Assembly (NCBI GenBank): GCA_964247055.1
Contig: OZ176052.1
Location: forward strand, 5,208,001 to 5,272,000
DNA from: Paragordius varius
Taxonomy: Eukaryota; Animalia; Nematomorpha
Direction of reading: 5' to 3'
DNA: 64,000 nucleotides
Position numbers and translations under genes: made by a program
Shown here: piece after piece, positions 5,051 through 64,000 of the stretch
How positions within the stretch are numbered: the stretch's first letter is position 1
How the letters are laid out: each line of letters begins with the position of its first letter
The notes under the pieces: model-generated
The model's database searches: none
What the model was told of the DNA's origin: nothing
The model's input: the letters and a program-made list of their open reading frames with translations, nothing else

Positions 5051-5219
5051 CAGTAGCGTATGGTATAAAACATTATTAATCCATAAAATAATAAAGTTTT
5101 TTTTTTAAAAAAAACAAGCCTAATTGTATATACAGATATCCATAATATCCACTTGTTTTTTTAAAAAACATTTTTTTATTCTTTTATGGACTAATATTGT
5201 TTTATGCCATACGCTACTG
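5051..5219. mobile_element. TA-flanked MITE (Tc1/mariner-type signature)
   Basis: Perfect TIR CAGTAGCGTATGG / CCATACGCTACTG with TA on both sides; degenerate second copy at 46098-46206. Confidence 0.75.
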
Positions 5220-5457
5220 TATTTATGCAAGTAAAAGTTCTAAAGATCAAGCAGGAAAATTTAATTAAAGGTAAACTCAGTCATATCTTGTATTCTGAAT
5301 ATTTATAAAAAAAATAAAATGAAGGTTAGTAAAATAGTGTATGAGACTAAACTAAGTGCTAAAAAATAATTATTACTGATTTTAAAAGAAAAAGAGTTAT
5401 TTTAATTTTTCTGCCCTGAAAAATCATATTACCCGCATCAGGTGGGATAAAAATATA

Positions 5458-6083
5458 CGATTTACACTTCAAGAGTGTCCTTGAACAATTCAAGTTGGTC
5501 CTTGAACAATTCAAGTTGGTCCTTTAACTTTTTTGCTTTGTTTTTAACTTTTATCAATCAAATCGAAAATAATTCGTTTATTTTATTGTTTTTAACCTAT
5601 TTTCTATTATTTAACATAAATTTTAAATTGATATCAACTTTTAATCTTTGAAAAACCGTATATCTTTATTAATTTCTTAAAATAAATTTGGATATTTATA
5701 AGATTTTAACATGAAATGAAAAATTATATAAGTTTTCTGGGTCATTAATTAAAATTTCTCATTAAAAACATTTAAAAGTCAATAATTTTGTTCAATTGAA
5801 AAAAATAGTTTTAAACAAAAAAAGTGGTTTTTCAATAAAAAAAATTTATTTTTAAATGAATAGTATATAATAAATAAAGAAAATTAGGTTAAAAAATAAT
5901 TAAATAAAAAAATAAATGCAAAAATTATGGTTAAATCAAAATTAATAAATTTTAAGGACCAACTTGAACTGTTCAAGGACCAACTTGAATTGTTCAAGGA
6001 CCAACTTGAACTGTTCAAGGACCAACTGGAATTGTTCAAGGACCAACTTGAATTGTTCAAGGACACTCTTGAAGTGTAAATGG
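5458..6083. mobile_element. Foldback-type MITE with 21-bp subterminal tandem repeats, copy 1
   Basis: TIR C(C/G)ATTTACACTTCAAGAGTGTCCTTGAAC followed by arrays of the 21-bp unit CCTTGAACAATTCAAGTTGGT (about 2 left, 5 inverted right); homologous full copy at 40715-41322. Confidence 0.85.
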
Positions 6084-6649
6084 TTATATACAATGGAGAA
6101 AAACGCGTAAACATTTTATTTGTCATTGTGATAAATGCTAAATATTATTTATATTTAGGTTTCATTTTTTTTCAGATAAGCTACGAAAGACTCACATAAA
6201 AACAAAATCGCTTTTTAGCGTGATAATAAACCAAAAATTCTCTTCGATTATGCGATAAAATACTTTTTAATCAAACTAACCCAATACTATACTATGCCTC
6301 CAATTTACTCAAGAATCGAGTTTGAAAAATGGTTTAAATTTTATATGAAAAATATAGTTTTTTAGCAATTTTAAACATTATAATTTTCGCGCAACTTGTT
6401 ATACAAATCATATGGGATATTTTGGCATACAGCCGAAACATAAAAAGACAATGCATTTTTCAACCTATCTTCCCAAATAAATTAGAAATGTCAAATATAT
6501 AATCAATTATGTTACCAATTCATATCACTTCATACTTTGCATATAAAAACAATGAGTTATATTTTAAAATAGCGGTCTTTAGAAAAAAATATTTGTCTTT
6601 AAGTTTTTACGTTATGTCTGCATAATTCTATCTTAATTGTCCATATTAA

Positions 6650-7100
6650 CACTTCAATTTGAATTAAAGTATCTAGTTACCCCAGACTATATTAATATAT
6701 TTAAAATTATTGCAAGAAACGGATTCAATATAAATTTATGCTATTATCTTAATAAAATAAGTGAAAACATGTAAGTAATTTAGGAATAAAGTTTCATAGC
6801 AAACTACTTCGACTTTTATAACATTTTCGCAAAAACATCGTGTTTATTTGATTCTAACGCCAAAATATAGCTAACTAATTTTTTGTTAAAATCACATTCA
6901 CATTGATATAAACAAAAATGGTGTATTTTACATTATTTGTATATTTTAATGCACACATGTCTTGAGTAAATTTTTACTTTGAGGTTTATCCATAAAATAA
7001 GTAATATCAAGTTTTTTAAATAAATTTTTTATATTTTGGTGCATAAATGTATGTAAGTGCAAAATTTTATTTTTTTTGAAATATTTGATTTTTAAATAAT
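6650..7100. mobile_element. piggyBac-like MITE family A, copy 2 (second end not found; end coordinate approximate)
   Basis: TTAA|CACTTCAATTTGAATTAAAGTATCTAGTTACCCCAGAC start; internal ATCGTGTTTATTTGATTCTAA shared with the 59726 copy. Confidence 0.6.
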
Positions 7101-7639
7101 TCTTTCCACTATTTATAATTAGTAAAATATCAGTCACATAGCGCACATTATATCAAATATTTTTTGGTAAAAGTTAAAGGTTTTAAACCATATCATAGAT
7201 GAATGTATAATGAAATTATTTTAAAACCGATTTGGTCATATAATATTAATTTTTTGTGGTTCCCAAAAGTCTTAATAGTGACCCCAAATTTGGCCATTAA
7301 TAAATGCAAAAATGCTTCGATTTCGCCACAACATTTATGTTGGATTATCGCATTCTTTGCTTAATATAAATTTTATTAAGATTTTGTTGCAAAGTACGTT
7401 GTGATATTTTGGACGAGTAAACGAAAAACCCTAATACATATATAAAAACACTTTTGGGGTAAAATTTAATGCGAGTTTCTTTCTCCTCAGTTTTAATCAA
7501 TAAAACATATATTTAAGTTGAAGGCATAAATATATTTTGTCTTGATGTAATTACCACAAAAGCTGTCCCAAAAGCTGAGAATCTGATATTTCCAACAATA
7601 TATACATATATATATATATCATTGATATACATAAGGCCA

Positions 7640-8330
7640 CATAAATAACCTGATAATAAAAATATATATATATATTCCAATAGTAAAATGTGTTATGATT
7701 ATCATGATGTTGGTTTTGGCCCTTTTTACGAGTGATTTAGGATAGTTATTTTCACTTATATGGCAAGTGCTTCATATCAGAAAATGGCAAACACACTTTT
7801 AAAAAAAAATTTGGTGCAAGCTTCATTTTAAAAAAACACTAAAATATTTCATAAACATCTAAAAAGCAAAACATTTTCAAAAAAAATATTTTGTGGGCTC
7901 CGATAGTCCTAATTTTTTTTTCTCTTTGGATAGTGGTCTTAAAATAAACGCAAAAATGCTGGGATATGCCATATTTCAAATGTATGCAATTTTCATATCA
8001 ACTAAAAATATTTTTAAGTACAACTTTTCAAGTTTTTATATTTAGCAAAATTTTGTTCAAGCGTACTAACGGTATAAAACACTAAATTACAAAAACACTT
8101 TTTTTAAATAATTCTAGGATGCTTAATAATTCTATCATCTCAGAACTTTGATTAAAAAATTTGTTCATCTTCAAATTTATTTAATTATTTTTTTTACAAA
8201 AACATTTCAAAATTTTGTAGCAAATGAACTTTAAATTAAAATTCTTATGCAATAAAAATGTTGAGTATCATCGAACCATATACAAAAAGTGATCTTATAA
8301 TATCTTAAAGCGTCTTTAAACAGTTTTCAT
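7640..8330. repeat. Arm of a dispersed long-TIR (foldback-like) repeat family B
   Basis: Shared motifs AAATAACCTGAT, GTGATTTA.GA.AGTTATTT, AAGTGCT.CATATCAGAAAATGGCAAA also seen at ~14540, 35700, 36556(rc), 37700(rc), 58960, 60700(rc). Boundaries approximate. Confidence 0.7.
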
Positions 8331-9823: not shown

Positions 9824-10340
9824 ATGCACTCCGATAAACATGTGATATATTCGAACACTCCCTCTACGGAATTGCTTTGTTTTTTAAACCAAACAGCAAA
9901 TGTTTATCTGAAAGAATCAGAGATTTTGAATGGAAAAATTTACACATTTGATCCAATTTCTAAATGGTTTTATTTTTTCTTATATTAGTTTATTAATGAT
10001 TGATAAGTGTGGTGATGCTCTCTTGATACCTCATCACAATATTAAACATATTGAATTTTATAAAGAAGAAAATGTTGACAATACAAACCTAGATAAATTG
10101 TTTAAAATTAATCTACCAGCGTATAGTGATAATCAAATTTGCACCAGAAAAACTCAAATCGAATCATTTTTTAAGGCTCGAATGATTCCTGTATCATACA
10201 CAGGCGAGAAATCTGAGACATTTTCCCTTTTTAATGGAATTTTACTGATTGAACCTCCATATGCTACTGAAAATTGCCTCAGTGCTAATGTCAAAGTTTT
10301 GAAACAAATTCAAAAAATGATGAATGAACTTTCATTATAA
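9824..10340 (+). CDS. GEMIN6: Gem-associated protein 6 (SMN complex); exons 9824-9966 and 9989-10340, 164 aa
   Basis: C-terminus AYSDNQICTRKTQIESFFKARMIPV..GILLIEPPYATENCLSANVKVLKQIQKMM matches recalled Gemin6 AYSPEDLEERKNSLKKWLEKNHIPI..GVLTIDPPYGPENCSSSNEIILSRVQDLI; the N-terminal Sm-like part (LNGKIYTFDPISK) is in another frame and joins via a 22-nt GT-AG intron. Confidence 0.88.
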
Positions 10341-15200: not shown

Positions 15201-15262
15201 GTTCGATTATTAACTTTCAAAACCTTCTAAAAACACTAATTTAGGTGGTTTTCATAAAATAA

Positions 15263-15973
15263 CACTGTGCAACAAAATATGGGGTCAATTTTCTGGACTC
15301 GATTTTCTAAATATTTTCTGATTTCTTATAGTATTGTGATCAGATTTGCGTAAAAATTTTTTTTACTTTCCCAGCTCGTTTTCGAGATATGGGACTTTTT
15401 CCATATTTGGACATATCCAAAATTTTCTTGTTTGTAAATATTTTTCGCTATGTAAACGAATAATATGTGGCTTACATAAGTATTTTTACAAGAAATTACC
15501 AATTTATCTTCAAAATAAAAAAAAAAATTACTTAAAATATCCAATACTTTTTGTTTTAGGGGGCAAAAACCCTCAAAAATTGGGTAACTTAACATTTTTT
15601 CACACAAATATTTTTTATCAATTTATTAAATCAAAACAAACTTTATTATATGTTCTTGGATGTTAATAATGTTTGTTTAAATATAAATATCACTTTGTAA
15701 TAGCTTTGTGGACTTTTATTTTTAAAAATAAATTTAATTTTTACAGCTTTTTTGTTGCTTTTTTTATGTAAAAATAATTTAATTTACAGCTGTAAATACT
15801 AATTTCATTTTTTCATCTGAAATTTTTAAATTTTGACCATATATGGTGGCATATATGTTGATTCGTTTGCTTCATTTTTAAATATTTTAAAATAATATAA
15901 AATGGACAATGATTCTTATATAAATTTGTGATTGAATTCTGAATCGGAAAAATCGTCTGCCTTTTAGATAAGA
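15263..15973 (+). repeat. Left inverted arm of the Chapaev3-type element
   Basis: Reverse complement of 18285-18984; roughly ten differences over ~690 bp by eye. Confidence 0.95.
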
Positions 15974-16822
15974 GAAGAAAACACCTTGATACCATCAAAT
16001 ACATTATATATATATATATACTTTAGGGATATGGATGATTCCCTCTTTGTCAAGAGTGCAATCTAAAGAAGCTTATTACCCTTATGAAGTTTTACGATAC
16101 TCGGAAATGAATTCTTTTTTAAAAAAGTTTAATCACCCATAAAATTTCAGTTGTTTAGGGAACAGGTATGCCACAGGGAAATCAAAGGAAAGCACCCTCA
16201 TATACTAAATTATATTTTTAATAATTTTAACCATATATTCTTAAAAATTTTATTTGGGTTATCGTCTCTTCAGTTAAATTATTTTTTGTCGTTAATTCAT
16301 TTAATTTAAACTATTGTCGCTTATCAACAACTCTAATCAACCTTTGTTTTTTGCTGATATATGTTTAAGCATAAATTTAAGTTAATGATATCTTACCCCA
16401 ACCTGTTGGGATCTATATTTAACTGATTTGTTTATTCCACCTAGACAATGTATGACATCGCCCAAGTATTTAAAATTATTTACCAATTCAATTTTGGCGT
16501 CTGCCACATAAAAGTATTTTATTAATAGGTAGTTATATTATCATGACAAAGTACCCAATCGCAACAATTTGTATATCACATCAGCTAATAGATTAGCTTT
16601 CAATATGGACGACTGTGCAGAGAAAATTGAAGAATATGCCTAATAAAATATACCATTAATAAATAATTTCATCATATTATATTGAACTATATGAAAATCC
16701 TAATTATAATCAGTTATTAGAGTGAATATTTGGAATATATTTTGGTCAAAAGATTTTAAGACACGGATAATCTAATCTAGAATAATAAAGTAAATTAGGT
16801 GTAGAAAAAATAAAATAATAAT

Positions 16823-18290
16823 TTATTTATTCATATATATATAATCGCAAATTAAATTTATATTGTTTCGATAGGTTTTTTCGAAGGGTTTCAAAAGCTG
16901 GTGACCCTTTTCTCCTCTTTGGTCACTAATTGAGTCTTTTGGAAAAAAATGTAGATGGGAATCCACCATATGGAGCTTTAGACTCATGCGGCATCCTATA
17001 GGATAAAAATTAATATAAATGTTTAAAAAACAAATGTATTATAACATACATACCCATCCTATTGAAAGAATCGATTAAACGATTGCCTAATTCCAGATGG
17101 TTCTTATTTTTTGTATTTCCCAAAAAATTTTGAGAAAAAGTTCGCAATGCAACCCATGCCGCTTTTTCTTTGGGTTGCATTTTAGATTCAAACATAACAT
17201 CATTGAAAAGATTCGTAACCTAAAATTAAAAGTATAATACCAGCGGCCCTATCAAAACTGCGGCGTTAATTTTGGCAGGCGTCATCCTGAACTTCCTGAA
17301 GTAATGGGCCCAAGCTTCGCCATTTTTATCGAGACTGCACAAAAATGTTTTGGCCAATCCAAGCAGTATGTGCAATGGCGGCAAAACAAATTTGTTAGCT
17401 GATATTAATGGAGAATTAGTCTGATTCTTGGGCCCAACTTGATAAGTTCTGGCGGGCCAATTTTTTTTGTGTAATGGTTATCGGTGTCCCGCGAGTCCCA
17501 TTTACACAAAGGACAAAAGAATTTAGGAAATCCTTTCTGTATTCCGTAAAGCAGTCCCATGACCTATAAAAATATTAGAATTTTAGAAACTTTATAATCC
17601 CCTGTTACATGCCAATAATGGAAGTTGTATCGGAGGAGTTGCAAAATATTTTCAAAATTATCATAGGTTTCCCTATAAACTTGGCTGAATGCTATTAATA
17701 TTGGCCTGTGTTCTCCGGCACGGTCCAATAAAAATGCCTTCAAACTTTCCTAAAGATGTAAAATATTATATACCTGAGAAGCGTCTAGAAATAATACCCA
17801 TTGTGATGAATCATATGGATAATTTATTTCCTGCATTAAGCCAATTATATCATGACACCATGATAAATAACTGTTTTCGGAAAAATATTTTCGGAAATTT
17901 ATTCCTCTATTCCGAAAACTGGTTATATTGATGTCAGTTAAATTCTTTCGATTAAGAGTCCTCACCATAAGTTCGGACAACCTAATATCATAATATATTA
18001 AAAAAATGTTTAGCGTATTCAAAGATAAATACAAAATTTAACTTATATATTTAACGCATTTCAGCTTAAGAAAATTAAAATAAATTATAAAATGCGCAAA
18101 TCTATTATTTTTTCTAAAAATACCGTTTTGAGAGATGCAACTTTTTGATTAGGGATATCACCTCAGTGCCACTTAATTTATTAGTATCCTTTATATCTTG
18201 CTGATAAAACTCCAAATCAGTATCATCCATCATATCAAATAAATCCATATGAATGGTTGGAGATGGTGGTACGGGAAGATCAGTTCTTAT
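16823..18290 (-). pseudogene. Chapaev3-family DDE transposase, 6 exons (18290-18124, 17981-17774, 17749-17591, 17563-17241, 17219-17054, 16995-16823), ~398 aa; one frameshift at the A8 run 17461-17468; N-terminus not found
   Basis: Spliced product: DLPVPPSP..LIKKLHLSKRLSELM..QWVLFLDASQESLKAFLL..WHVTGDYKVMGLLYGIQKGFPKFFCPLCKWDSRD..HYTKK/WP..LPPLHILLGLAKTF..LIGPLVTNLF..FLGN..MGCRMSLKLHMVDSHLHFFP..ISDQRGEKGHQ, colinear with recalled family consensus WRLFIDSSKRSLKAVLL..ICGDLKV..FPCFLCEWDSR..LPPLHIKLGL..GCNMSLKIHFLHSHLDFFP..SDEHGERFHQ. Confidence 0.85.
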
Positions 18291-18984
18291 CTAAAAGGCA
18301 GACGATTTTTCCGATTCAGAATTCAATCACAAATTTATATAAGAATCATTGTCCATTTTATATTATTTTAAAATATTTAAAAATGAAGCAAACGAATCAA
18401 CATATATGCCACCATATATGGTCAAAATTTAAAAATTTCAGATGAAAAAAAATTAGTATTTACAGCTGACTAAATTAAATTATTTTTTACATAAAAAAAG
18501 CAACAAAAAAGCTGTAAAAATTAAATTTATTTTTAAAAATAAAAGTCCACAAAGCTATTACAAAGTGATATTTATATTTAAACAAACATTATTAACATCC
18601 AAGAACATATAATAAAGTTTGTTTTGATTTAATAAATTGATAAAAAATATTTGTGTGAAAAAATGTTAAGTTACCCAATTTTTGAGGGTTTTTGCCCCCT
18701 AAAACAAAAAGTATTGGATATTTTAAGTAAATTTTTTTTTTATTTTGAAGATAAATTGGTAATTTCTTGTAAAAATACTTATGTAAGCCACATATTATTC
18801 GTTTACATGGCGAAAAATATTTACAAACAAGAAAATTTTGGATATGTCCAAATATGGAAAAAGTCCCATATCTCGAAAACGAGCTGGGAAAGTAAAAAAA
18901 TTTTTTACGCAAATCTGATCACAATACTATAAGGAATCTGAAAATATTTAGAAAATCGAGTCCAGAAAAAGTTGTGTCACAGTG
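18285..18984 (-). repeat. Right inverted arm of the Chapaev3-type element
   Basis: Near-identical inverted copy of 15263-15973; explains the duplicated ORF pairs in the track. Confidence 0.95.
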
Positions 18985-19218
18985 TAATTTTTGTCAATTT
19001 GAAATATAAATTTAGCGATAATATAAAAATATTATTAAATAACCAACAAAAAATAAAATGATTATTAATACCTATGATTTCTGGCGCATAATATTTTTTA
19101 ACCTTAGCATCTTTGTGGTAAATATCTATTCTTATGAAAATTGGACCCTGCTCATATGATTATTCTATCATATTGAATGACGTATTTGTCTACAACTTTG
19201 GACCGATGATTCAGACCT

Positions 19219-21301
19219 ATGGAAAAGAATGAGTTAGAGCCTGTGGAATACGATTCCAGTGATGTTTTTTCAGATTTGACTCCAAAAACTGGAAATTCTA
19301 ATTCGTCAAATACCAATAATCATGAAATAGTAGACATTTTACAGCCCTCTGAAGTCAGGTAAAAATATTTATTTATATATTAGGTGGTTCTATTCAAGTC
19401 CCAAAAAGACATGGATACCATTTCTTGGCTATGATTCATTGCGAATTGAAATATCTTACAGGCAACTTCATTCTGGTATAAAGGGACTTGAATCATTTTC
19501 AGTTGATACCATATCAGTTCGTGGGGATTTATACGAAGTTGACTTACTCAGTAAAACATGTTCTCCGATATATTGGTCAGGTAAATTGTGTAAATTTATG
19601 ATATAAAATACCTTAATATTTAAACAAGGTTTCCATATAAACAATGGGTATCAATCATAAAACTTGCATATAAATTTAGGAGAATCAGTAGATGTACTTA
19701 GGGGCTCCTGGTTTTTTGACGTAGGATGGCAACCTTTAGAAGAAGAGTATGCTAGTCAATTGGAAATCGAACATTTGGCCAAATTTGCTGGTTGGAAAAA
19801 CGTAACTACCCCAAACAACTCACATGATCTGAACCAACGCGTTGAAAATATAGTTAAGGAGGAATTGGCAAAAATGGAAAACAATAAGACCTCAACTAAA
19901 GGCAAAAATTCTCCATTAGGTAAACTGAGAAGCAAAAATATGTCACCAAAACATTCTGTGATTGGAAAAGTTTCGCCCCTTTTAATTTCACAACAACCAG
20001 CTGTTGGTATGATTTTTAATGTAATCATAATATTATCTTAACATTGACATTTACCACTGCATTTTAGTGAACTCTTCAAATTTTTGACGGGTATATGAAT
20101 TTTTTGTGAATTACTCCAATAAATGTATCATTGCTAAATTACTAGTTTAATTATTTTTTAGCGGCTCATTTGAACTTTTTTTGCTAATATTTAGGTACAA
20201 TTACAACATAAATCGAATGCCCATTTTATATTCAAAAGTTAAGGATGTTATTTAAAAAATGAAATGTTTTTTAAACGCTTTATACTCTATATAGATGCCA
20301 AGTCGGACAGTTCTAACCAAAGATCTCAATCCTTAGATCCAAGTAGTCATATGTATTCACCTCTGATCTCAGAAGTTCCCACATCACTCAATAACAATAA
20401 TGGTTTAGAAACAACTAAAGGTGACAAAAAGGAAAGCTTAGCCAATGGACATATTCCATTGCAAAATTTATCTACTGTACCTGAAAATGAAAATGCAGGT
20501 AAAAATTTTTGCGATAAAGCTTTTTAATTATTAAAGTTTTTGAGGTGAAACGGGTGACGCATTTGTTATAATATTTGCACTTAAAATATTGTGTAATTTA
20601 AATATTAATTTATAAACAATTTGTTTGCTAGGTTTTAGTAATTCATTTTCGCATATTTATTCCTTTCTAAACTTCATGATACATAATTTATAATGATATA
20701 TTATACTATAAAAAATTATGTTTTCTTGTTAATTACCTGCTTTACCCTATCTTCGATCATACATTGTTGAAAAATATCAAATTGACATCATCTAACATAT
20801 AATTTGCCAATTATCGAAAAATTTTATAATGATATATATTAGCCAATATAACCACAAATATGAGAAATATATTCTTTCGAAACTTTGTATAAATTAGTCT
20901 AAATTTTAATATTTTATACATTTGTAAAGATGAGACTAGCACTACAGAAACTAAACCAAATTCTTTAATTAATCATGGGCCAATATCACCTTTGAAAGGA
21001 GGGGATGGAAAAACATTAAGTAGCGCAACAAAGAAAAAAGCAACATCGTATTACGCTACACCTTTGCACACTTTAAATTTCAAAGATTTTTACGTTGAAT
21101 GGTACAGCCCTAATGAAGTGTACATGTTTAGTTTAGCCACTTCATCTAAACTGTATCGTTCGGTAATTTTTTTATATATAGCATTTTTTGTAGTTAACTT
21201 AATCAACATTTTTTAATAAATTATTATGGTTCGGGGTTTAATTAATTATGGTTTAGTTAGTTGATATAAAATATATATACTTGTTTTCATTTATTTTTCG
21301 G

Positions 21302-21359
<58 letters not shown>

Positions 21360-24300
21360 CTGTTTTGTTAATACCATTCGTTAGTTAACCTATGCGTTGG
21401 GATTCCAAAAAACGGGTTTACGTTTAAACCGCGGTTACTGTATCCAAGCAAATGAGAATGATAAACCTCCAGATATCACTCATCTAGTCTTTGTTATACA
21501 TGGTATTGGAGCGAAATTAGATGCTAGCAAATGTATCCGAAATTGTGGAGTGTAAGAAATATTTTATGCTAATTTAAATTTTATAATGCATATTTTTTTA
21601 ATAATATAAATAGCGTCTATATACTATTTGGCTCATGCAGATCATTATGTACTTTTTTTTCATTTTTAAATACAACAATTAAGTTTTTGCATTATCATCG
21701 TTTATGAGTATATATTCCCACAAATTATTGGTTTTTGGGTATTTTGACAATTGATATATATGTATATGTAGATTAGGATTATAATTATCTGAAAAATTTT
21801 AAAAAAATATTTTTTGAAAAATGGTCATGTTCAAATTTTTTTACAACATGGATTATTGATGAATATATAATACTTTTATAGAATGCGGGACCAAGCAGCT
21901 AAACTAAAACAAAAATGTTTTAGCGAAAAAACGGCTCAAATCATTGGTAATTTAACTGCGGTCGATAAATTAAAAAACCCTAACATTGAGGAAGAAATTA
22001 AACAAAACATTGAGAAAGATTGTGTTTTGGCCAGGGCCGAGTTCTTACCTATTGAGTGGAGAGCCAATCTTAAATTGGATGATGGTTTCTTTTTATCATA
22101 AATAATTATATTTTGGTTTAAAGAAGAGTTTTTTGATATTATCATTTTTGTTTTTTTTCCTTTGTCCACAGGGGCGGTAGATATGGTGTCACCAAAGAAC
22201 GTGATAGGGTTAAGAAGTATACTAAATACCACAGTCATGGATATTATGTATTACACAAGTCCTATTTTCCGGAATGAAGTAAAAAAATTAAAACAATTAT
22301 ATATATTTTTGGCATGAGAAAATTTACAAATTGTAATGCACAAACTGTTTTTATATTATTATTATTATTATTATTATACTAAAATAATAAAATCGATATT
22401 TTGTTTATTTCATAGATTTTAACTGGTGTCAAAAATGAGTTAAATCGCTTATATAACATGTTTTGCCAACGTCACCCAAATTTTGCCAAAGATCCCAAAA
22501 ACAAAGTTTCAATCATTGCTCATTCCCTTGGTATAAATAAAAAAATGTTTTTTTAAAAAAATAATTTGCTTTCTAAAAATTTAATTTTAGTGTTTTAAAA
22601 ATTGAAACAATTATGTGTGTATTTTTTGTTTGTTTAGGAAGTGTCATAATACACGATATTATGTCGGGATGGAATCCATCATATATTCATCAAAATTACG
22701 TTGATCAAACATTGGTATATATTTTAGAAACATTTTTTTTCTTAACCATAATTTATAAATATTTTTGTCGGTAATATTTATTAATTTAGATAATTAGTGT
22801 CTTTCCAAACTTTATTTAATTATTTTTGAAATCATATGAAAAATTAATGGATTAAATCTAAGTTTTATCTGTCATAAGTTAATATGATAATTAAAAACGC
22901 TATTAGATACTACATTATTGCTAAAAGTTTTATTGGTATTTTAAAAATAACCTATAATTTTTTAAAGTTCTTATCTATTATTTTCTTAACTTATTATGTC
23001 AGGTGTTTTAGTTTATGGAGTATACCTAGCCTAAAACTTTTGTTTCAACTGAGCTTTATTAAATTTTTTATTTTTTTTTCGATTCAAGCTAGATAGATAA
23101 ATAGATGCTGTTGTCTGGGAATTTGGGCCTTCGTTACGGTTTTTTTACCGGTATTAATGTATTGAAGAATTTTTGTACCTATCATTGGCTTTTATTTTTT
23201 CAGCTTGTAGTTGTATTGCTTGACCATTAACTCTGTTTTTTTTGGCTTGAAATTTATTATATTTTTTATCCAATCATCATTTCATCTAATCTTTGCACAT
23301 GACCGTACAGCCGAGTCTATGGATCAGGAGGCATTATGAGATTTGAAGAGCATGTGTTTTTTCGCTTGAATAGACTTGTCATATTTTTGTTTCACATTGT
23401 CCAGCTTATTCTCTTGATATTCTACTTCACTCTAGTTAGCATTTAAAATTTATTTTCAGATCTTTTGTTTGAGACTAAATATATATTTAAAAAACAAATC
23501 ACTGATGTAATAGAAAATATAAGTCATGCTAAAATCTAATATTAATCACATTTAAGAGTTACTTTAGCTCATCTAAATAATTTTTATAAAATACATCCCA
23601 ATTAGCCTGTAATGATAAGTTATTCTATATCTTGCTATTTAAAAATGAATATTAATTAGTACCAAGTTTTCTAGAAAGCTTTAGAAAAGGCAAATTTTTC
23701 TGTCTCTTCTCTCTCTTCTCTCTAAATGATTAAAATTGATTAATTTTTTCACTCACTAAGTCTTCAAGAAGTTGAGTATAAAGTGTTAATTTTGAATTTT
23801 TAAAAAGGGTGTTCATAACTTGTTATTAATATTGTTCTGTTACATAATTTTTGCTTTTAAATTATGCAGAATGATGTAATTGAAGACGCATCAAGTCCAG
23901 AAGACAAAGAAAATTGGTTAAAATTTGCGGAAAATCTTAAAGCTCAGTAAATATTTTTTTATTAATTATAAATATTTATATAAACTAACATTATGATATC
24001 ATTTTATAATTTAATTTTGTTTTTTAATATATAGAGTGGTAGATATTGAAAAAAAGCTCATTTATATCCGCAAAGATCGCTCAAGTCTTAAATTTAAAGT
24101 AACTGACCTTCTAAACAATTTATAGCATATATCTATTCATATTAGAACTCAAATAATCAAAAATTATTATGTTTTAAGATATATTAAGGTTAAAATAAAC
24201 GGATCTATTAAATGCTTTTTGTTTAATTTTTAATTAAAAATTAGTAAAATGTCAACAACCAAAAACCGTTGTTTGGAAATCATTTTATTTTGTTTTTGAA

Positions 24301-27300
24301 ATTAAAAGGAAAGTGCTTTAATGAACTGCAATGCCTCTATAAACAATTTTGCTTTTTCAGTACTTTTTTTTACCAATAACCATTTCATTACTTTTATAAG
24401 CATATACACTTTATTACACTTTTTTATTTATAAAGATTTTTCCACAAAAGTTGAAAACTAAAAAATATATTTTAAGCTTTAACACAAAAAGCAAACCCCT
24501 TAATATATCGTTTTTATGTTTTAAGGTTGAAAATTTGTTTTTACTTGGGTCACCGTTAGCCGTGTTTTTGGTCATGCGTGGCATATCTATTTACGGCCGT
24601 TCAGTGAACGCTGATAAATCTGCCCTTCAAGAAAAATTGTTACAAGTTACACCTAGAGAAGATACCACCACATCTTTCTTAAAAACAGAATCCCCATCCT
24701 CCACTTCAGTTATTAACAGTGCACGAAAAACATTTTTTGATCAAAGCCTTGATGTAATGTTAAAAAATGAGAATATTTCTCAGCAAGATGAACCAGCTAA
24801 AAAAGGTAATGGTATATATTTGCGGCAATAAATTGATTATCCAATTAAATTTTGGTTTTTAAATGGTGATGCACGGAATATTTTTGTATACATTGTTATA
24901 ATAGATTAGATTTTTTAACTAATTAGACTAGAATCTAGCGTAAATTAGTGGATATTTTTAAATGTTCAATTAAAGTTAAATTTCATTTTATTATCCGAAA
25001 ATTTGAAATTGAAATATAAAAACCCCAAGTGTATTAATGATCCATCGTACTATTGAGTTTAATTATCTCATATATTTGCTACGTTTACCATTATTACGTG
25101 AATATTTATATAATAATTTTTACATTTAGCACAACAAACTCCTCTTCGACCCTCACCACCCAGACCTGTAACACCTCCAAAACCAAACATCCTTAAAATG
25201 TCAACTGAAACTGAAAAGAATGAAAAAAATTACACATTGAAATCACCAGATTCACAAATCTTATCCCCAACAGGGGGCGAAAAAGAAAGTTTACAACAGG
25301 AATTAGAACGTATGGATAAAGAACATAATCGAAATCGTACTTCTTCATTCAACAAAAATAATAATGATAATAAGGCTAAAAGCAATAGTGATATTATCCA
25401 AAAACAAGGGAAAGAAAACGAACCAAAATACGATAATGATTACCAAAAGGAAGGAGAAAATTATGATGAAACTGACACCCACATCTCAACTAACACAAGT
25501 TTTAAGCCCAAAATTTCAGTGTTACTGCCCCGATCCATTTGCAATTACATCTATAACATATATCATCCAACTGACCCAGTGGTAACTTAATATTTGTTTA
25601 TCGGTTTAATTATTTTCATACAGTAAAAAATATATTTATTAAGAAAAAAACGTAAAACTTAGATACAATATTTTTGCTAAAAACAGCTATTTTGATTTAA
25701 CCTATCATCGTTTTAGGTTAAAAAATAAGGGATACAGATACACTTTAAATTCATTCTCAGTTATACATTTCACAATTGTAATCATTTAGCGTATAGAGAA
25801 GTCAGGGAGTATGGCTGTTCTTTTCTAAAAATATTTGTCTTTTAGTTTTTACTTGTCTTTATAATTTAATTTTTACTGTAACGTCCCACTTTAACTGCCC
25901 AAATTCTTTAATATATAAATAGGCTTATCGATTGGAACCTTTGATATCTTTCGATTATATCAATGTTAAGCCAGTGCCAGTTTACAGGTATGAAACAGCT
26001 AACAAAGTAGCCTATGACCAAATAGCACCCGAAAATTATAATGTTAATGTCAATAGTATTAATCCTACCTCTAATACTAATCAATCTACGAATCCAAATA
26101 TTAATTGTTTAACTAATCACATAAATCATGCTTCTGGATTATTATCAGACGCCTTAACTGAGAATTCTGAAAACATTAACATGGTTAATACGGATATGGA
26201 TACATCATTGATTCCAGTTTGTTTTTTATATATTTACACTATTTTAGATTTCGGGTGAAACTTTCATTTAATCTTTGGTTAAGCTTAAACTTATTATCCA
26301 TTTACTTCAATTGAACGTTTATTTTAACAATTCATAAAAACATGGAGTTTTTCTTTTTTTGAGATAATATGATATTCTACAATAGATAGCGTTATTCAAA
26401 AGGGAAGAGGGTTAACTAAGCGAAAATATCATTTTAAGCTGGTGTTTATATTTTTAGTTAGTACAATACACAATTCTATCATAATAAGCATATTCTTTTA
26501 AATTATAGTATAAAAATCCGGTTTATTATGATTTTAATTTGTAAATAATATGAGATTAATATTTTTATGGTTGTTTTTAAATTTTACCATAGGATATGGA
26601 CGATCTCGACCCGCAAGGTCGTTCTACACCACTAAATCAACCAATTTCAGACACGATACTACATAGAAAACACATTACCAAGTTAGAATCATCAAATAAA
26701 CGTACTCAATCACACCATACATACACAGATCCTCTTACAAAAAAGGTTTATAATCAATTTTAACCAATTTTAAATGTTGTTTTATATAAAAGGCATAAAT
26801 AATAAAGGAGTGATTATATTTTATTAAAGGGAGAATTTTACCACCTTAATATTATTGTTTCGATTTAGTTTATTTTTTTTTAACATATTGTAATTAACAA
26901 TTATACCATATATTGGCTTGTGTTGCATTTTATATTTTAGATGATTCCAAAACCAGCACTTATTGACAACACCGCTAACATTCCAAATCTGGAGGGTATT
27001 ATATTATTTTAATAATTTAATACGAAACTAAAATATATATATTTTTTAAAGATTGTTACAATTTGGATATGTTTGTTTTTATAATAAATATTAATAATTA
27101 TAGATGATTCATTTAAAGAATATCAATCTACCGCTGGTTTACAAATGCAATATGGTTCGATTGCTATAGACCCAACCATAATTCGAAGCGCACACTTTAG
27201 CTCATTACATGAAAATCCTACCCATGATTCAAATACTAAAGACGAAAATACTCCTTTAAATAATACCTCTTCTACTACTGATACAAATAATTATCAATTT

Positions 27301-44103: not shown

Positions 44104-47100
44104 ATGAAAATGATGATAAAATATCTTATTTTACTATTTAGTAAGTCCTTTACTGCTAAGAGCCCTAAAAATCAATTCACGTATGAAAATGAATTATAGA
44201 AAAGCTATCAGATTAGTCCATCCAAAGCGATTGTATACTTATCCAGGATCGGAGGAATATTTTAATCCAGAAATTGGAGTAATAATTAATTCTTATAATA
44301 AAAAACCTGAAATATGCTTAAAATCGTTATAGTTACAAAAATAAGGAAATATTTTTTAAACAATTTTTTTATTAATGATCGAAAGATTCGTAATATTGTT
44401 CTAGTAATATAATTAATATGAAAATCACAAATTTTAATACATTAATTTAGCAATGATATTCATTTCTATAAGTTTTCTATGTGATACTGTCCTACAAACT
44501 TCTTGTAAGCATTTAAAACGTCATAATTCAAACAAAATTAAAAAATTAATTTTACTTTTTATATTTTAAATATATTTAGGATAATACTGATATGTCTTAT
44601 CTAATATTATTAAATATTAATTTTATAATAAAAAATGTTTTAATATATATCTTTAATAAAAGAGTGATGTGGAAATGAGTCATAAATTTATACCCTTATT
44701 AGTTCTTTATTTGGTTGGGTCAAATGATGAAACTTAAATTTTTTAAAAAAAATGTACACTGCAAAAAATTGGCGGAAAGGATAATGTTGCGCAAAATTTG
44801 TAAAATTGCATTCTATGGCCTTTTACGCAAATAAAAAATTATAAAAAATAAAAACCCCTACTTTTCAAGATTTTTATATACCATTTACAGTTTAAATTCA
44901 CCCTTGAAAAATTCAAATTCACCCTAAAATAATATGTGTTTTTTAAAGTGAAAAATTATTTATATTTTTTTTATTTTTTAAAAATAGAAATTATAAAATT
45001 AATATAATGTTGAAAAATAGTAAACTATGCCATAAGAATATATTTTGTATTAATGATGAGTTAAATTATCCCAAAAACACATAATTTATTTTTAGGGAAA
45101 ATTTTAAATGTTCTAGGGTTAATTCGAATTAAGGGTGAATTCGAAATATGGTATATTTATTAATATGCTGAATTTATATTACTTTGATCTTATATCTGTT
45201 ATCTTAAACTGGCATTTTCTGAATAATTTTGACTGTGTAAATGTCCATCCTCAACTTTAAACAATAAACTTACTTTTCCGTTAAGCCCAGAAACCAAATC
45301 ATCACGCATATATCTTATTTATTTTTTTAGCCACAAGATTCATATTTCTCTCTAAAAGTAACCAAATACTTGGTATTAGTCAGAATAAAAACTTGTCCCA
45401 CATTTCGACCTGTAAAAATAACAACGCCTTCTGTGTCAATATACCATCCGCCAACGACCCAACAAAGGATTCCTCCGAATTATGGGGCTGCAGGGGGTGT
45501 TTTGCTTAACCCTTTTATTCTGATATCTCCATTTATTGCCAATGTTAATAAACATTTGGTAAAAAACACATCTAAAGTACCGAGAATGCAAGCAACTTCC
45601 TCAATAAAAATTTCACGGACGACAAAACCTTATGTGGGACTCCTTACAACGGCCATTTCTCCATTTACGTTTACAAAAAAATCTATTTCCACTTCCCAAA
45701 CAACGAAATCCACAACTAAAGTTGACAATGTTCGACGAAAATGTCCAAAACCTATAATTGAGGGAAATTTTAAAATATTGGGTGGAAATCAAGCAAATAC
45801 AGGATTCTTTCCATGGCAAGTGTTAATTAGTACTCCTAAACGATTAGTATGTGGTGGATCTTTGATTAAAGAAGATACTGTGCTTACCGCTGCGCACTGT
45901 TTCAAACATATGTAAGATAAGATTGATATAATATATATGTAATTAAATCTAACAAAAATGCACTTAATAACATATCAGTGTCGTACCGAGCGGGACAAGG
46001 TTGTTATTGTAAAGAACACCAAAATAAACTTTTTTACAAAATATATAAAATACTTTTCCATTGAAGATATTTGTAAAAGCTTGTCAAAAAGAGGATACAG
46101 TAGCGTATGATGTAAAAAAATTTGTCCATATTAAATAAATAAAATTAATGTTAGGAAAAAAAATTATTTAATTCTACCATTTGTTGTTTTTTACCATACA
46201 CCATTGTAAACAAGGCAATCGGTACGACATTGCTAATGATTTTACAGAGATAGGGTTTTGTATGAATGATGAATATTACTAGGATAAGGGATTGGTTGTG
46301 TTTTGTAATAACAGTTGTTAAAATCCGTAAGATAACGATAAAGAAAAATTAATTAGAATTAAATGAAAGTATAAGTAGAAAATATAAACGATACGTGAAA
46401 CCCTTCGTCGTTTTTTTGTGCGCAAATTTAGTAAAAATGTCAACAAGCTGAAAATAGAAGCTGGAATTTACCACATAGATAATAAAATGTATGGACAAGT
46501 GCGAAGTGTGAAAAAGCATGTGGTACATGTTAATTATACTTCAGAAGGTAATTAATACGGTAAATTTCTAAAAACATAGCATTATTTGAAATTATTAAGT
46601 TTTAATTTAGGGACACCCTTTTTCTACTAGGACCTCTCGTTCGGGTCATTTTTCCTTCATTTTTACAAAATTGCAAATGATTTACCATTAAACAATTTAA
46701 AAGCAAAAATATTAAATTTTGTATCCAATGCTTAATTAAACATTTCAGTTCTCTTTTTAATGCCATTTTCTTTTACAAGTTTTCTTAAAGTATAGTTTAT
46801 TTGGATATTTTAAGCATTCATTAATGTGAATACCCTTGAATACTACTTAAAGATATTTATAAAATATATCTGCATAAAAAATTTACTTATCGCGGTATAC
46901 ATAAAAAAATGATAAAATACACTTACTTTTCGTTCTATTTGTCATTACAATTCCATCAAATATTAGACATTAATCCTCTGTTACCTATTGAAGAATTTCG
47001 GTTTAAGTCGAAATATTATTTTTAACCCTGATTGTATTATTTATAGAAGACATATTCCTAAACGATATTGCACTAATAAAGTTGAATGAATCCTTCGTTT

Positions 47101-49570: not shown

Positions 49571-52500
49571 TTAATTTTTTTCATCAAAAGAAACATCGAT
49601 TTGGACGAATGTTTCACTAAAAGTATCCATAATTGCTTTATCTCGTAATGAAAGAGTATGCGTAGGTGATGAGCCTGAATTAATAATGTTGTTGGAGATT
49701 CCATAGTTAATACTCGATTTATTTATTTTTTCTGTACTGGTAATATTCAATGAAGATTTACTATTACACCTAATTAAATGGGTAAATGTTGCAAATCTCC
49801 GTAAACTATTCATTTTGAAGGGAGAAATTTTTCGCACATTGGTATACAATTTCCCTAATGGCGTAACAATAATAAATCCAAAGAAGCGTTTAAATTTACT
49901 CCTAATCGGGACTCTCGTTGTGGAGGAGGATAGGATGGTTTGAGGCACTGATTTGCTGTTGTCGTTTGCCAAATATGAAACATTTTTGTCCCTAAAACTA
50001 GAGATTTTTAAAGTCGAAAAATCTAATTTTCTATTCGCTTTTTTGATAGGCGAAGATGGTGGGAATAGCAATTGGTGACTATGAACTTTAGTGACGTATC
50101 CACCCCACCGCAACTTATAAGTATTGTTTTTCCATTTTAAAACAGATGTGCTCAACGCTATAAAAAACAGGGGCAAAGCAGAAATTTCCCGGTATAGCCA
50201 AGCACATACGAATTCAGCCCGTGTAAAGGGTAGTTTATCATGCTATATTAGTAAATAAAAATCATAAAGACAAACGTAAAAACAAATTGCTTATATTTTT
50301 TTACAATATTTTGTGATCAACTATTTAATATTAGCTCTAAAAAATAGTTGTGTATTGTTAATTTACATCTCTCCCAAACAATAGGTCATAATAAAAAATT
50401 ATGGTCTAAAAATATGGTTCTTTAAAAACTATTAGTTTTTAGTTGGTTGTATATAAAGTGAAAAAATGTCTTAAAAATACAAATAAAGTACAATAGCTAT
50501 TTTTATCCCTTTTGTCAAAGAGAAAGAATGAAAATTGAACGAACGAAGGTTTTAACACTCGTCTGCTCGCACGGCAATCAAATTTATGACAGCAATTATC
50601 CGTTTATGAATGTAAAGCGTACAAATATATTAATTAAATGTATAAAAAGCCAAAAAAATTTACTTGTACAATTCTTAGTAATGTGTAATCAAGAATCAAC
50701 CATACAACACAATGGATTATGAAAAAGAGCACGCTATTCCAATCAAATAAGTAAAAAACGGCCCAACTATTTAAAAGGCCGAGAAGAAGGCATTCACTAA
50801 GAGGCTCAAAAAATATTGTAACGGGTTCCATCGCAAATCTCAATTTCGACCACCTATACATAAAACATGTTTTAAGCCACAATCACGTGAAATATTAAAA
50901 AATAGAAAAAATTTAAATTTTATCTGAATAAAATTCGAGGAACGGAAATTGTAAAAAGAAACATAAAAAATATAATAAAATTTGGTTAATTATCAAAAAT
51001 AACTACAATATATATATATAATCTCTCTGTACCTAATCAATCTCTCTTGAAAACTTCGAACACCCTTCCAGCAAAATCCACCGCTCATGATGTTTGGAAA
51101 GCAGACGGGCACCAATTTTAAATTCCGAATTAAACGTCGCGCACATTTACGTATTATACCGTTTTTTCGCAAAAAAAACTTATGGCGCATAGGGAGGGCC
51201 GGTAAAGGTGTCGATATTGGTTTATTCGCAACTTTATTAGATGTGGATGATGATATTGCAACATTATTTAATATATTTTTGCAGGGTAATGATGAAATGG
51301 TAGTGGGGTTGGGGTCGACATAATTGTTGCAGTTTTTATCATTGTTAGCTTTATGGGTAGATGATTTTGTGCTCCCACCGTGGTTGTTTTCTTGTTCATA
51401 CATGACATGTTGGAATTTTTGTTCATATAAATTTAAATCGGTGTCAATGATATTTTCATTTTTACCATTCTTAGGGTTAGATATACCATTCTGGTTGTGT
51501 ACTGTTATGTCAAAAACATCTACTATATCATTTGATGGCTTAATGTCTGTGACTGTTTGTGAGGAGCATGTAGTTATAGGAAGAGTATCAAATGTTAACT
51601 TTACAGTATCGTAGGTCGAAGTTAAGGGAGCATCTATTGCTATTCCAGGATTTTGAAGGGCCGGTCTCGTACTTATGCGGTGAGAGTAACCGGCTTGACG
51701 AACAGCCCGTGCCATGAAATAATCTTCAGCCAAATATTTGCCAAACATAGCTATCCCCCCAGGCAATCGATCAATCAATGATTTTCGAAACATGCTAGAC
51801 ATACCTGTGCAACAGTTAATGTGCAAGAAATCGGATACAAGGTAAATGCGGGCATGTGCAGTACCAAAATACACCTATAATAAAATAAATGGGACTTAAA
51901 TATGGGTAAATAAAATTTCTTAAAAATATTTTATATGCTATTGAACTTATAGTCAAAGTTAAAGTTGGGTCTGACCAACAATGAATAGATTCCATACAGT
52001 CATAATGATCGCTTTCAAACTTAACAGGCGAAAAATTTCGAAAATTTTACGCGATGTAAAAAATTATTATTTAATGTATAAAATTGATTAACAAAATTTT
52101 TTTGTGACATCAACCGATACAAAAATGCAAAATTTTTAAACTTTATAATGTTTTCGTCAATTGTTAGTCTATATATGATATTAAAAGTGTATAATTAATT
52201 AATTTAGTTCTTTTTTATTTGATTATAATAATATTTGCCATGGTAATATGTAGGGTTATGACCATAAAGGCGCTTAGAACGGTCATTAGCTTTGAGGTGT
52301 CAGCTAATCTAAGTCACAGCGAACTCATGATGGTATTTTAATTAGAAATGTGTTTTATTCACAGTTAACTATAATAATAATAATAATCTTTAGTGTAATA
52401 CTTAACTAATTTTATTGACATATTAAATATAGATTAAATATTTATTCTATAAACGTACAATGGAACATTTTTTTCACATATAAGGGAAAAAATTAAAAAA

Positions 52501-62624: not shown

Positions 62625-64000
<1,376 letters not shown>

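Follow-up and report, generated by a model that had tools for sequence, protein, structure and literature searches.

The locus at positions 15263-18984 of a 64,000-nucleotide (nt) stretch of Paragordius varius DNA (contig OZ176052.1, positions 5,208,001 to 5,272,000 of the forward strand; the whole 64-kilobase (kb) stretch is called the window below) raises the question of whether a DNA transposon whose transposase gene lies in six pieces on the minus strand is still a working element, and whether the segments of 21-27 nt that separate some of these pieces are introns. We consider it very probable that the element belongs to the Chapaev3-type (CMC) cut-and-paste transposons and that this copy is young, non-autonomous, truncated and broken in its reading frame, in an AT-rich animal host with very short introns. 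The two tips, the TAA target duplication and all of the catalytic motifs are retained in the copy, which would be mobile only in trans, if an intact relative supplied the transposase.

Borders, motifs and family assignment

The + strand of the element begins with CACTGTG (15263-15269) and ends with CACAGTG (18978-18984), and its insertion context reads a/TAA...TAA/t across both flanks. By our estimate, the chance of an exact A/TAA...TAA/T context on both sides is ∼0.001 at the local base composition. Inside the tips lie the two arms of a long inverted repeat, 684 nt each and 99.3% identical, which had escaped the original prediction for this locus. No second copy of the element is present in the 64-kb window. 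The coordinates of all features are collected in Table 1.

Table 1. Features of the transposon copy, in window coordinates
Feature	Position	Strand	Remarks
Whole transposon copy, 3,722 base pairs (bp)	15263..18984	- (strand of the transposase gene)	Tips, target duplication, inverted repeats
Left target-site duplication TAA, A before it	15260..15262	.	Fits the Chapaev3 A/TWA context
Right target-site duplication TAA, T after it	18985..18987	.	
Left tip, CACTGTG plus a stretch three indels away from the right tip	15263..15288	+	
Right tip, inward CACTGTG, then ACACAACT	18970..18984	-	
Long inverted repeat, left arm	15289..15972	+	Differs from the right arm by 5 mismatches and 3 indels (1-3 nt)
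Long inverted repeat, right arm	18286..18969	-	Inner edge abuts the first codon homologous to relatives
Exon 1, remaining part	18124..18284	-	Weak collinear homology, E 0.14 to 1.3, three relatives
Intron 1, 142 nt, GT-AG, 16% GC	17982..18123	-	
Exon 2, first catalytic D, in LFLDAS (17785-17783)	17774..17981	-	Profile 186-260, E 3e-16
Intron 2, 24 nt, GT-AG, phase 0, in-frame stop, 17% GC	17750..17773	-	8-residue gap in relatives
Exon 3, second catalytic D, in VTGDYK (17599-17597)	17591..17749	-	Profile 261-319, E 6e-12
Intron 3, 27 nt, GT-AG, phase 0, 15% GC	17564..17590	-	9-residue gap in relatives
Exon 4, CPLC (17515-17504), LH motif (17375-17370)	17241..17563	-	Profile 314-350 and 345-424, in different frames
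Run of eight adenines (A8), site of the reading-frame break	17461..17468	-	
Intron 4, 21 nt, GT-AG, phase 0, two in-frame stops	17220..17240	-	7-residue gap; relatives continuous at GPQ/IR
Exon 5	17054..17219	-	Profile 425 to ∼473, E 6e-11
Intron 5, 58 nt, GT-AG, phase 1	16996..17053	-	
Exon 6, HMVDSH (16972-16955), catalytic E in QRGEKGH (16912-16910), stop TAA (16825-16823)	16823..16995	-	Profile 473-537 of 554, E 2e-12
Non-coding stretch of 850 nt, stop codon to left arm	15973..16822	-	No protein family match

Relatives of the encoded protein were gathered with a phmmer search that used a 79-residue piece of exon 4 against 1.84 billion representatives and returned 424 proteins, among them full-length proteins of ∼450-570 residues. 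When these relatives are aligned to the window by tblastn, they match at 33-36% identity from 17989 to 16826 (∼34%). A family profile built from 12 relatives (554 positions) is covered contiguously from position 186 to 537 by six window segments, each with an E value of ∼1e-11 to 1e-20. The residues of the catalytic triad (D, D and E), the CxxC pair, the LH motif and the HxxxxH pair all fall on columns that are invariant in 9-12 relatives. The original prediction of a Chapaev3 element with CACTGTG termini, a TAA target duplication, six coding segments on the minus strand and these D/D/E, CPLC and HMVDSH residues is thus borne out in each of these particulars.

Published descriptions of Chapaev3 elements list CAC...GTG tips, a TWA target duplication between A and T, a DDE catalytic triad and the motifs C(2)C, LH and H(4)H (PMC4079192, PMC3014272). 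The window element, with CACTGTG at 15263 and CACAGTG ending at 18984, a 3-bp TAA duplication between A and T, and a DDE triad accompanied by C(2)C, LH and H(4)H, fits every hallmark, and on these published descriptions we place it in Chapaev3 (CMC group). The N-terminal zinc finger of the family is missing from this copy and present in its relatives. Anolis Chapaev3-1_AC and Chapaev3-2_AC, Merrow, Garfield and Conan share the tips, the TWA duplication, the DDE triad and the zinc motifs with this element, and its tip CACTGTGCAACAAAAT resembles the terminal repeat of Anolis Chapaev3-1N2_AC (PMC3014272). The described elements measure 1.8-1.9 kb, carry terminal repeats of 11-19 bp and encode 485-561 residues in one exon, or two in Merrow and Garfield (PMC4079192, PMC3014272), whereas this copy spans 3.7 kb, has short, imperfect, Chapaev3-like tips followed by the 684-nt inverted repeats, and is read from six exons separated by introns of 21-142 nt, with a frame break and no N-terminal domain. 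Other searches were negative: seven exon pieces had no match in Pfam, a word-index protein search with the 79-residue piece gave no candidates, exact look-up of three ATG-started open reading frames of the element in public assemblies returned none, and an exact 28-nt coding pattern was absent from JGI metagenome contigs.

Defects of the copy and its status

The six exons had been predicted to splice into ∼398 residues with no stops. Their coding bases add up to 1,151, a number not divisible by 3, and exon 4 changes frame within the A8 run, with HYTKK in one frame and KKNWPART in the other, so that ∼180 residues can be read before the break. In the relatives this site reads H-Y, then four residues, then W; no intron fits between such closely adjacent conserved residues, and an intron therefore cannot explain the break.

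The second defect concerns the N terminus. Full-length relatives start with a zinc-finger domain of ∼125 residues (FCYxCG ... CxxC ... WRxPxxHxxDCYFC), which gives a weak match to Pfam zf-AD in 6 of 16 relatives and is ZAD-like by fold (Z 5.3). Chapaev3 transposases carry an N-terminal zinc-finger domain named 'Chapa' (PMC4411706), to which the domain of the relatives probably corresponds. Neither profile positions 1-185 nor the CYFC and FCYxC motifs could be detected in any of the six frames, whether of the element or of the whole window, with the profile, with tblastn at lenient settings or with motif patterns. What remains of exon 1 is homologous in frame (TDLPVPPSP ... LIKKLHLSK) from 18284 and matches only the linker and helix ahead of the catalytic core of the relatives, and its first ATG, at 18248, corresponds to an internal position of the family protein. 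Nothing of the family protein ahead of about residue 128 is left in this copy, which lacks the first third of that protein, and we read the absence of the 'Chapa' domain as a truncation of the copy and not as grounds for excluding it from Chapaev3. Among ∼20 near-invariant family positions, three are substituted (K379L, L400Y and G415A, P0015 numbering; P0015 is one of the relatives).

Given the frame break and the missing N-terminal domain, the copy cannot make a working transposase, and the original description of it as near-intact, and as functional now or in the recent past, is not borne out. An autonomous element, essentially intact and able to mobilize itself now or very recently, would account for the retention of all catalytic and zinc motifs, the undamaged target duplication and the 99% identity of the arms, and the sole frame break is in a homopolymer, a kind of sequence in which assemblies make errors. 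Such an element should, however, possess the zinc-finger domain, which is absent here, the coding homology being cut at the edge of the repeat, and its frame should be open, which as assembled it is not; the three substitutions at near-invariant positions count against it as well. We consider an intact element unlikely.

The frame break could be harmless if the A8 run were a site of programmed -1 ribosomal frameshifting or transcriptional slippage. A -1 shift at this point restores H-Y-x4-W with the spacing of the relatives, the run contains A AAA AAA, a classical slippery heptamer, and a GC-rich hairpin of six pairs (GGCCCG...UGGGCC; 17420-17460, minus strand) follows it in a genome of 26% guanine plus cytosine (GC). 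This hairpin, however, is no better than those of shuffled sequences (z ∼-1, with 28-29 of 200 shuffles folding as well) and begins only 2-3 nt past the run, the relatives are encoded in single-frame open reading frames, and a one-base change in a homopolymer is far commoner than a programmed site, so a frameshift signal here is very improbable. We give equally little weight to a domesticated gene for an N-terminally truncated transposase, or a truncated repressor of the family comparable to the KP protein of the P element. Conservation of the catalytic motifs in a truncated protein would agree with either role, but the gene still sits between transposon tips with their target duplication, its frame is broken after ∼180 residues, and no RNA run containing the element was found among the runs matched.

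The long inverted repeat

Coding homology begins at 18284, and the edge of the inverted repeat lies at 18285/18286. Because the homology ends exactly where the repeat arm starts, we favor a foldback-type origin for the truncation, whereby the 5' part of the transposase gene would have been replaced by the 3' subterminal region, copied in inverted orientation. Foldback or palindromic derivatives of DNA transposons, such as inverted duplicates arising from gap repair, likewise have long, near-identical inverted arms in place of one end of the gene. This copy differs from them in that the duplication takes in only ∼18% on each side, the gene is for the most part single-copy and the two ends are unlike over their outermost 25 nt. 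Since the arms are 99.3% alike and the target duplication is intact, we have fair confidence that the insertion or the rearrangement was recent.

A TA microsatellite or palindrome at ∼15996-16033, directly inward of the left arm, may have been a hotspot for the rearrangement from which the long inverted repeat arose.

Introns of the transposase gene

The profile passes every exon junction with neither gap nor overlap, and the tblastn alignments open gaps in the relatives, precisely 8, 9 and 7 residues long, opposite the segments of 24, 27 and 21 nt. All five interruptions run from GT to AG and have a GC content of 14-17%, compared with 32-44% in the exons. The three shortest are all phase 0, their lengths are divisible by three, and each contains an in-frame stop, which means that their removal is still needed to read the enzyme. 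The micro-introns of 21-27 nt that had been predicted for this gene are thus supported by homology, as the profile is unbroken at the junctions and intronless relatives skip exactly these segments. We accept all five interruptions, the segments of 24, 27 and 21 nt included, as genuine GT-AG introns, which would be spliced out. That these three short segments are instead small insertions in a dead gene is scarcely credible: the lack of RNA junction support and the uniform phase 0 and multiple-of-three lengths, odd for introns, would suit such insertions, but these segments share GT...AG ends and low GC content with the two longer introns, stand exactly where the profile continues with no residue lost or gained, and by our estimate would require three chance GT..AG insertions at a probability of ∼1e-8 at this base composition.

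The relatives lack these introns, because the full-length proteins are encoded in continuous open reading frames and because a decayed relative on another contig (35% GC) is collinear with the family and has no gaps for the micro-introns. Short open reading frames that match the family are uninterrupted at the site of intron 4. Most Chapaev3 transposases have a single exon (PMC4079192). Within the window, a host segment of comparable form, a 22-mer running from GT to AG, is seen at 9967-9988 in the Gemin6 gene. We infer that this lineage gained the introns, and their host-style character makes a long residence in it a reasonable supposition. The transposase gene of this lineage would thus have at least five GT-AG introns, three of them of 21-27 nt, whose splicing would yield the enzyme.

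The decayed relative itself is intronless and occupies positions 5100-8100 of a 177-kb ENA contig (L001), where it keeps the N-terminal zinc finger. A mariner-type insertion (Transposase_1, 6560-7312) interrupts this relative, and Tc1- and pogo-like genes adjoin it.

It is conceivable, if rather doubtful, that an active master copy of the family persists in this genome and that at least five spliceosomal introns were gained after its entry, three of which have shrunk to 21-27 nt. If this were so, the family would be one of the few documented examples of a DNA-transposon gene that gained several introns and, being high-copy, a natural system in which to study the splicing of introns of <30 nt. 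The copy in the window is a broken passenger and matters as evidence on its family, not as an active element. A transposon family that usually has one exon, and here has at least five introns, supports the notion that the host genome imposes intron size and style on its mobile elements, and the family offers many independent copies for tests of sub-30-nt splicing.

Relationship of the fold to RAG1 and Transib

We assessed the fold with an AlphaFold model of the relative P0015 (predicted local distance difference test (pLDDT) score of 78), which is ∼34% identical to the window protein. The closest structural matches of this model are the RAG1 core (Z 16.9 over 364 residues), the amphioxus RAG1-like protein BbRAGL (16.4), HzTransib (11.8) and the P element transposase (11.6), and a Foldseek search places HzTransib and RAG1 at the top, with E values of 1e-7 to 1e-5. 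In the model D255 lies on strand 1, D309 after strand 4 and E507 on a helix, an arrangement shared with RNase H-like transposases. The RAG1/Transib-related fold that had been proposed for the element is in this way supported for the family by the P0015 model. We take the family transposase to be a DDE enzyme with an RNase H-like core, a CxxC/HxxxxH zinc module and a RAG1/Transib-like fold, preceded in full-length relatives by the N-terminal zinc finger. As modeled, the fold provides independent structural evidence that ties Chapaev3 enzymes to the RAG1/Transib core.

Details of the zinc module agree with this relationship. Both RAG1/Transib proteins and the Chapaev3 relative have two cysteines after the second D and two histidines before the E, and the spacing from the second D to the first C is 19 residues in the window element and in P0015. 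In RAG1 the spacing from D708 to C727 is also 19. The 7-nt tip of the element is one base off the recombination-signal heptamer CACAGTG. Unlike RAG, the element is not accompanied by a RAG2-like partner gene. At the level of sequence, neither the exons, the relatives nor the profile gave a RAG1 or Transib match in Pfam or the PDB; no Pfam transposase family matches the relatives or the exons, and a search of PDB sequences with the family profile returned nothing significant, only a weak ZAD match with E 0.38. Target duplications of Transib and RAG are 5 bp long, whereas the duplication here is the 3-bp TAA. Because of the 3-bp duplication and the absence of a sequence-level match, we conclude that the element is not a Transib.

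Observations that weigh against the proposed reading

Several points count against our reading of the locus as a young, truncated and frame-broken Chapaev3-type copy with spliced introns, or against single parts of it. Evidence of transcription or splicing was sought among RNA data, and no RNA run containing the element was present among the runs matched. The break in the A8 run may be a homopolymer error of the assembly instead of a true one-base change. The two ends differ by three indels within their outermost 25 nt, and the inner 684 nt differ by only three indels in all; tips more divergent than the arms are not predicted by a simple inverted duplication of the whole end, and the foldback step is accordingly one that we infer. 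The 684-nt repeat may instead be native to the family, with the N-terminal exons lost in a separate deletion. The placement in Chapaev3 is one made against published descriptions of these elements, and the fold is that of the model of P0015, a relative ∼34% identical to the window protein.

Spread of the element and its neighborhood

Near-identical 31-mers of the element occur in sequencing runs from eight studies with at least five organism labels, at shares of 0.31-0.59; one of these runs comprises only 24 million letters. This spread suggests a family present at high copy number in several species or in parasite-carrying hosts, or horizontal transfer. Horizontal transfer is well known for Chapaev3 (PMC4079192).

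Within the non-coding part of the element, an open stretch of 51 residues (…ELVNNFKYLGDVI…; 16385-16537, minus strand) resembles by eye the end of a retrotransposon reverse transcriptase; this reverse-transcriptase-like reading was set aside, as the stretch has no Pfam match. Past the right end of the transposon, at a distance of ∼680 nt, begin the exons of a gene for a DDHD-domain, phospholipase-like protein (19664-25590, + strand), and the element may lie in the 5' region or in an intron of this gene. Of the other host genes, RPC1 has an exon that matches diverse animals at 61-68%, none of them a near relative, which would fit an under-sampled phylum. Elsewhere in the window are the Gemin6 gene (9930-10340) and a gene for a trypsin-like protease (45370-45915), and the minus strand carries genes for a ceramide glucosyltransferase-like protein (50993-51874) and RPC1 (62625-63995).

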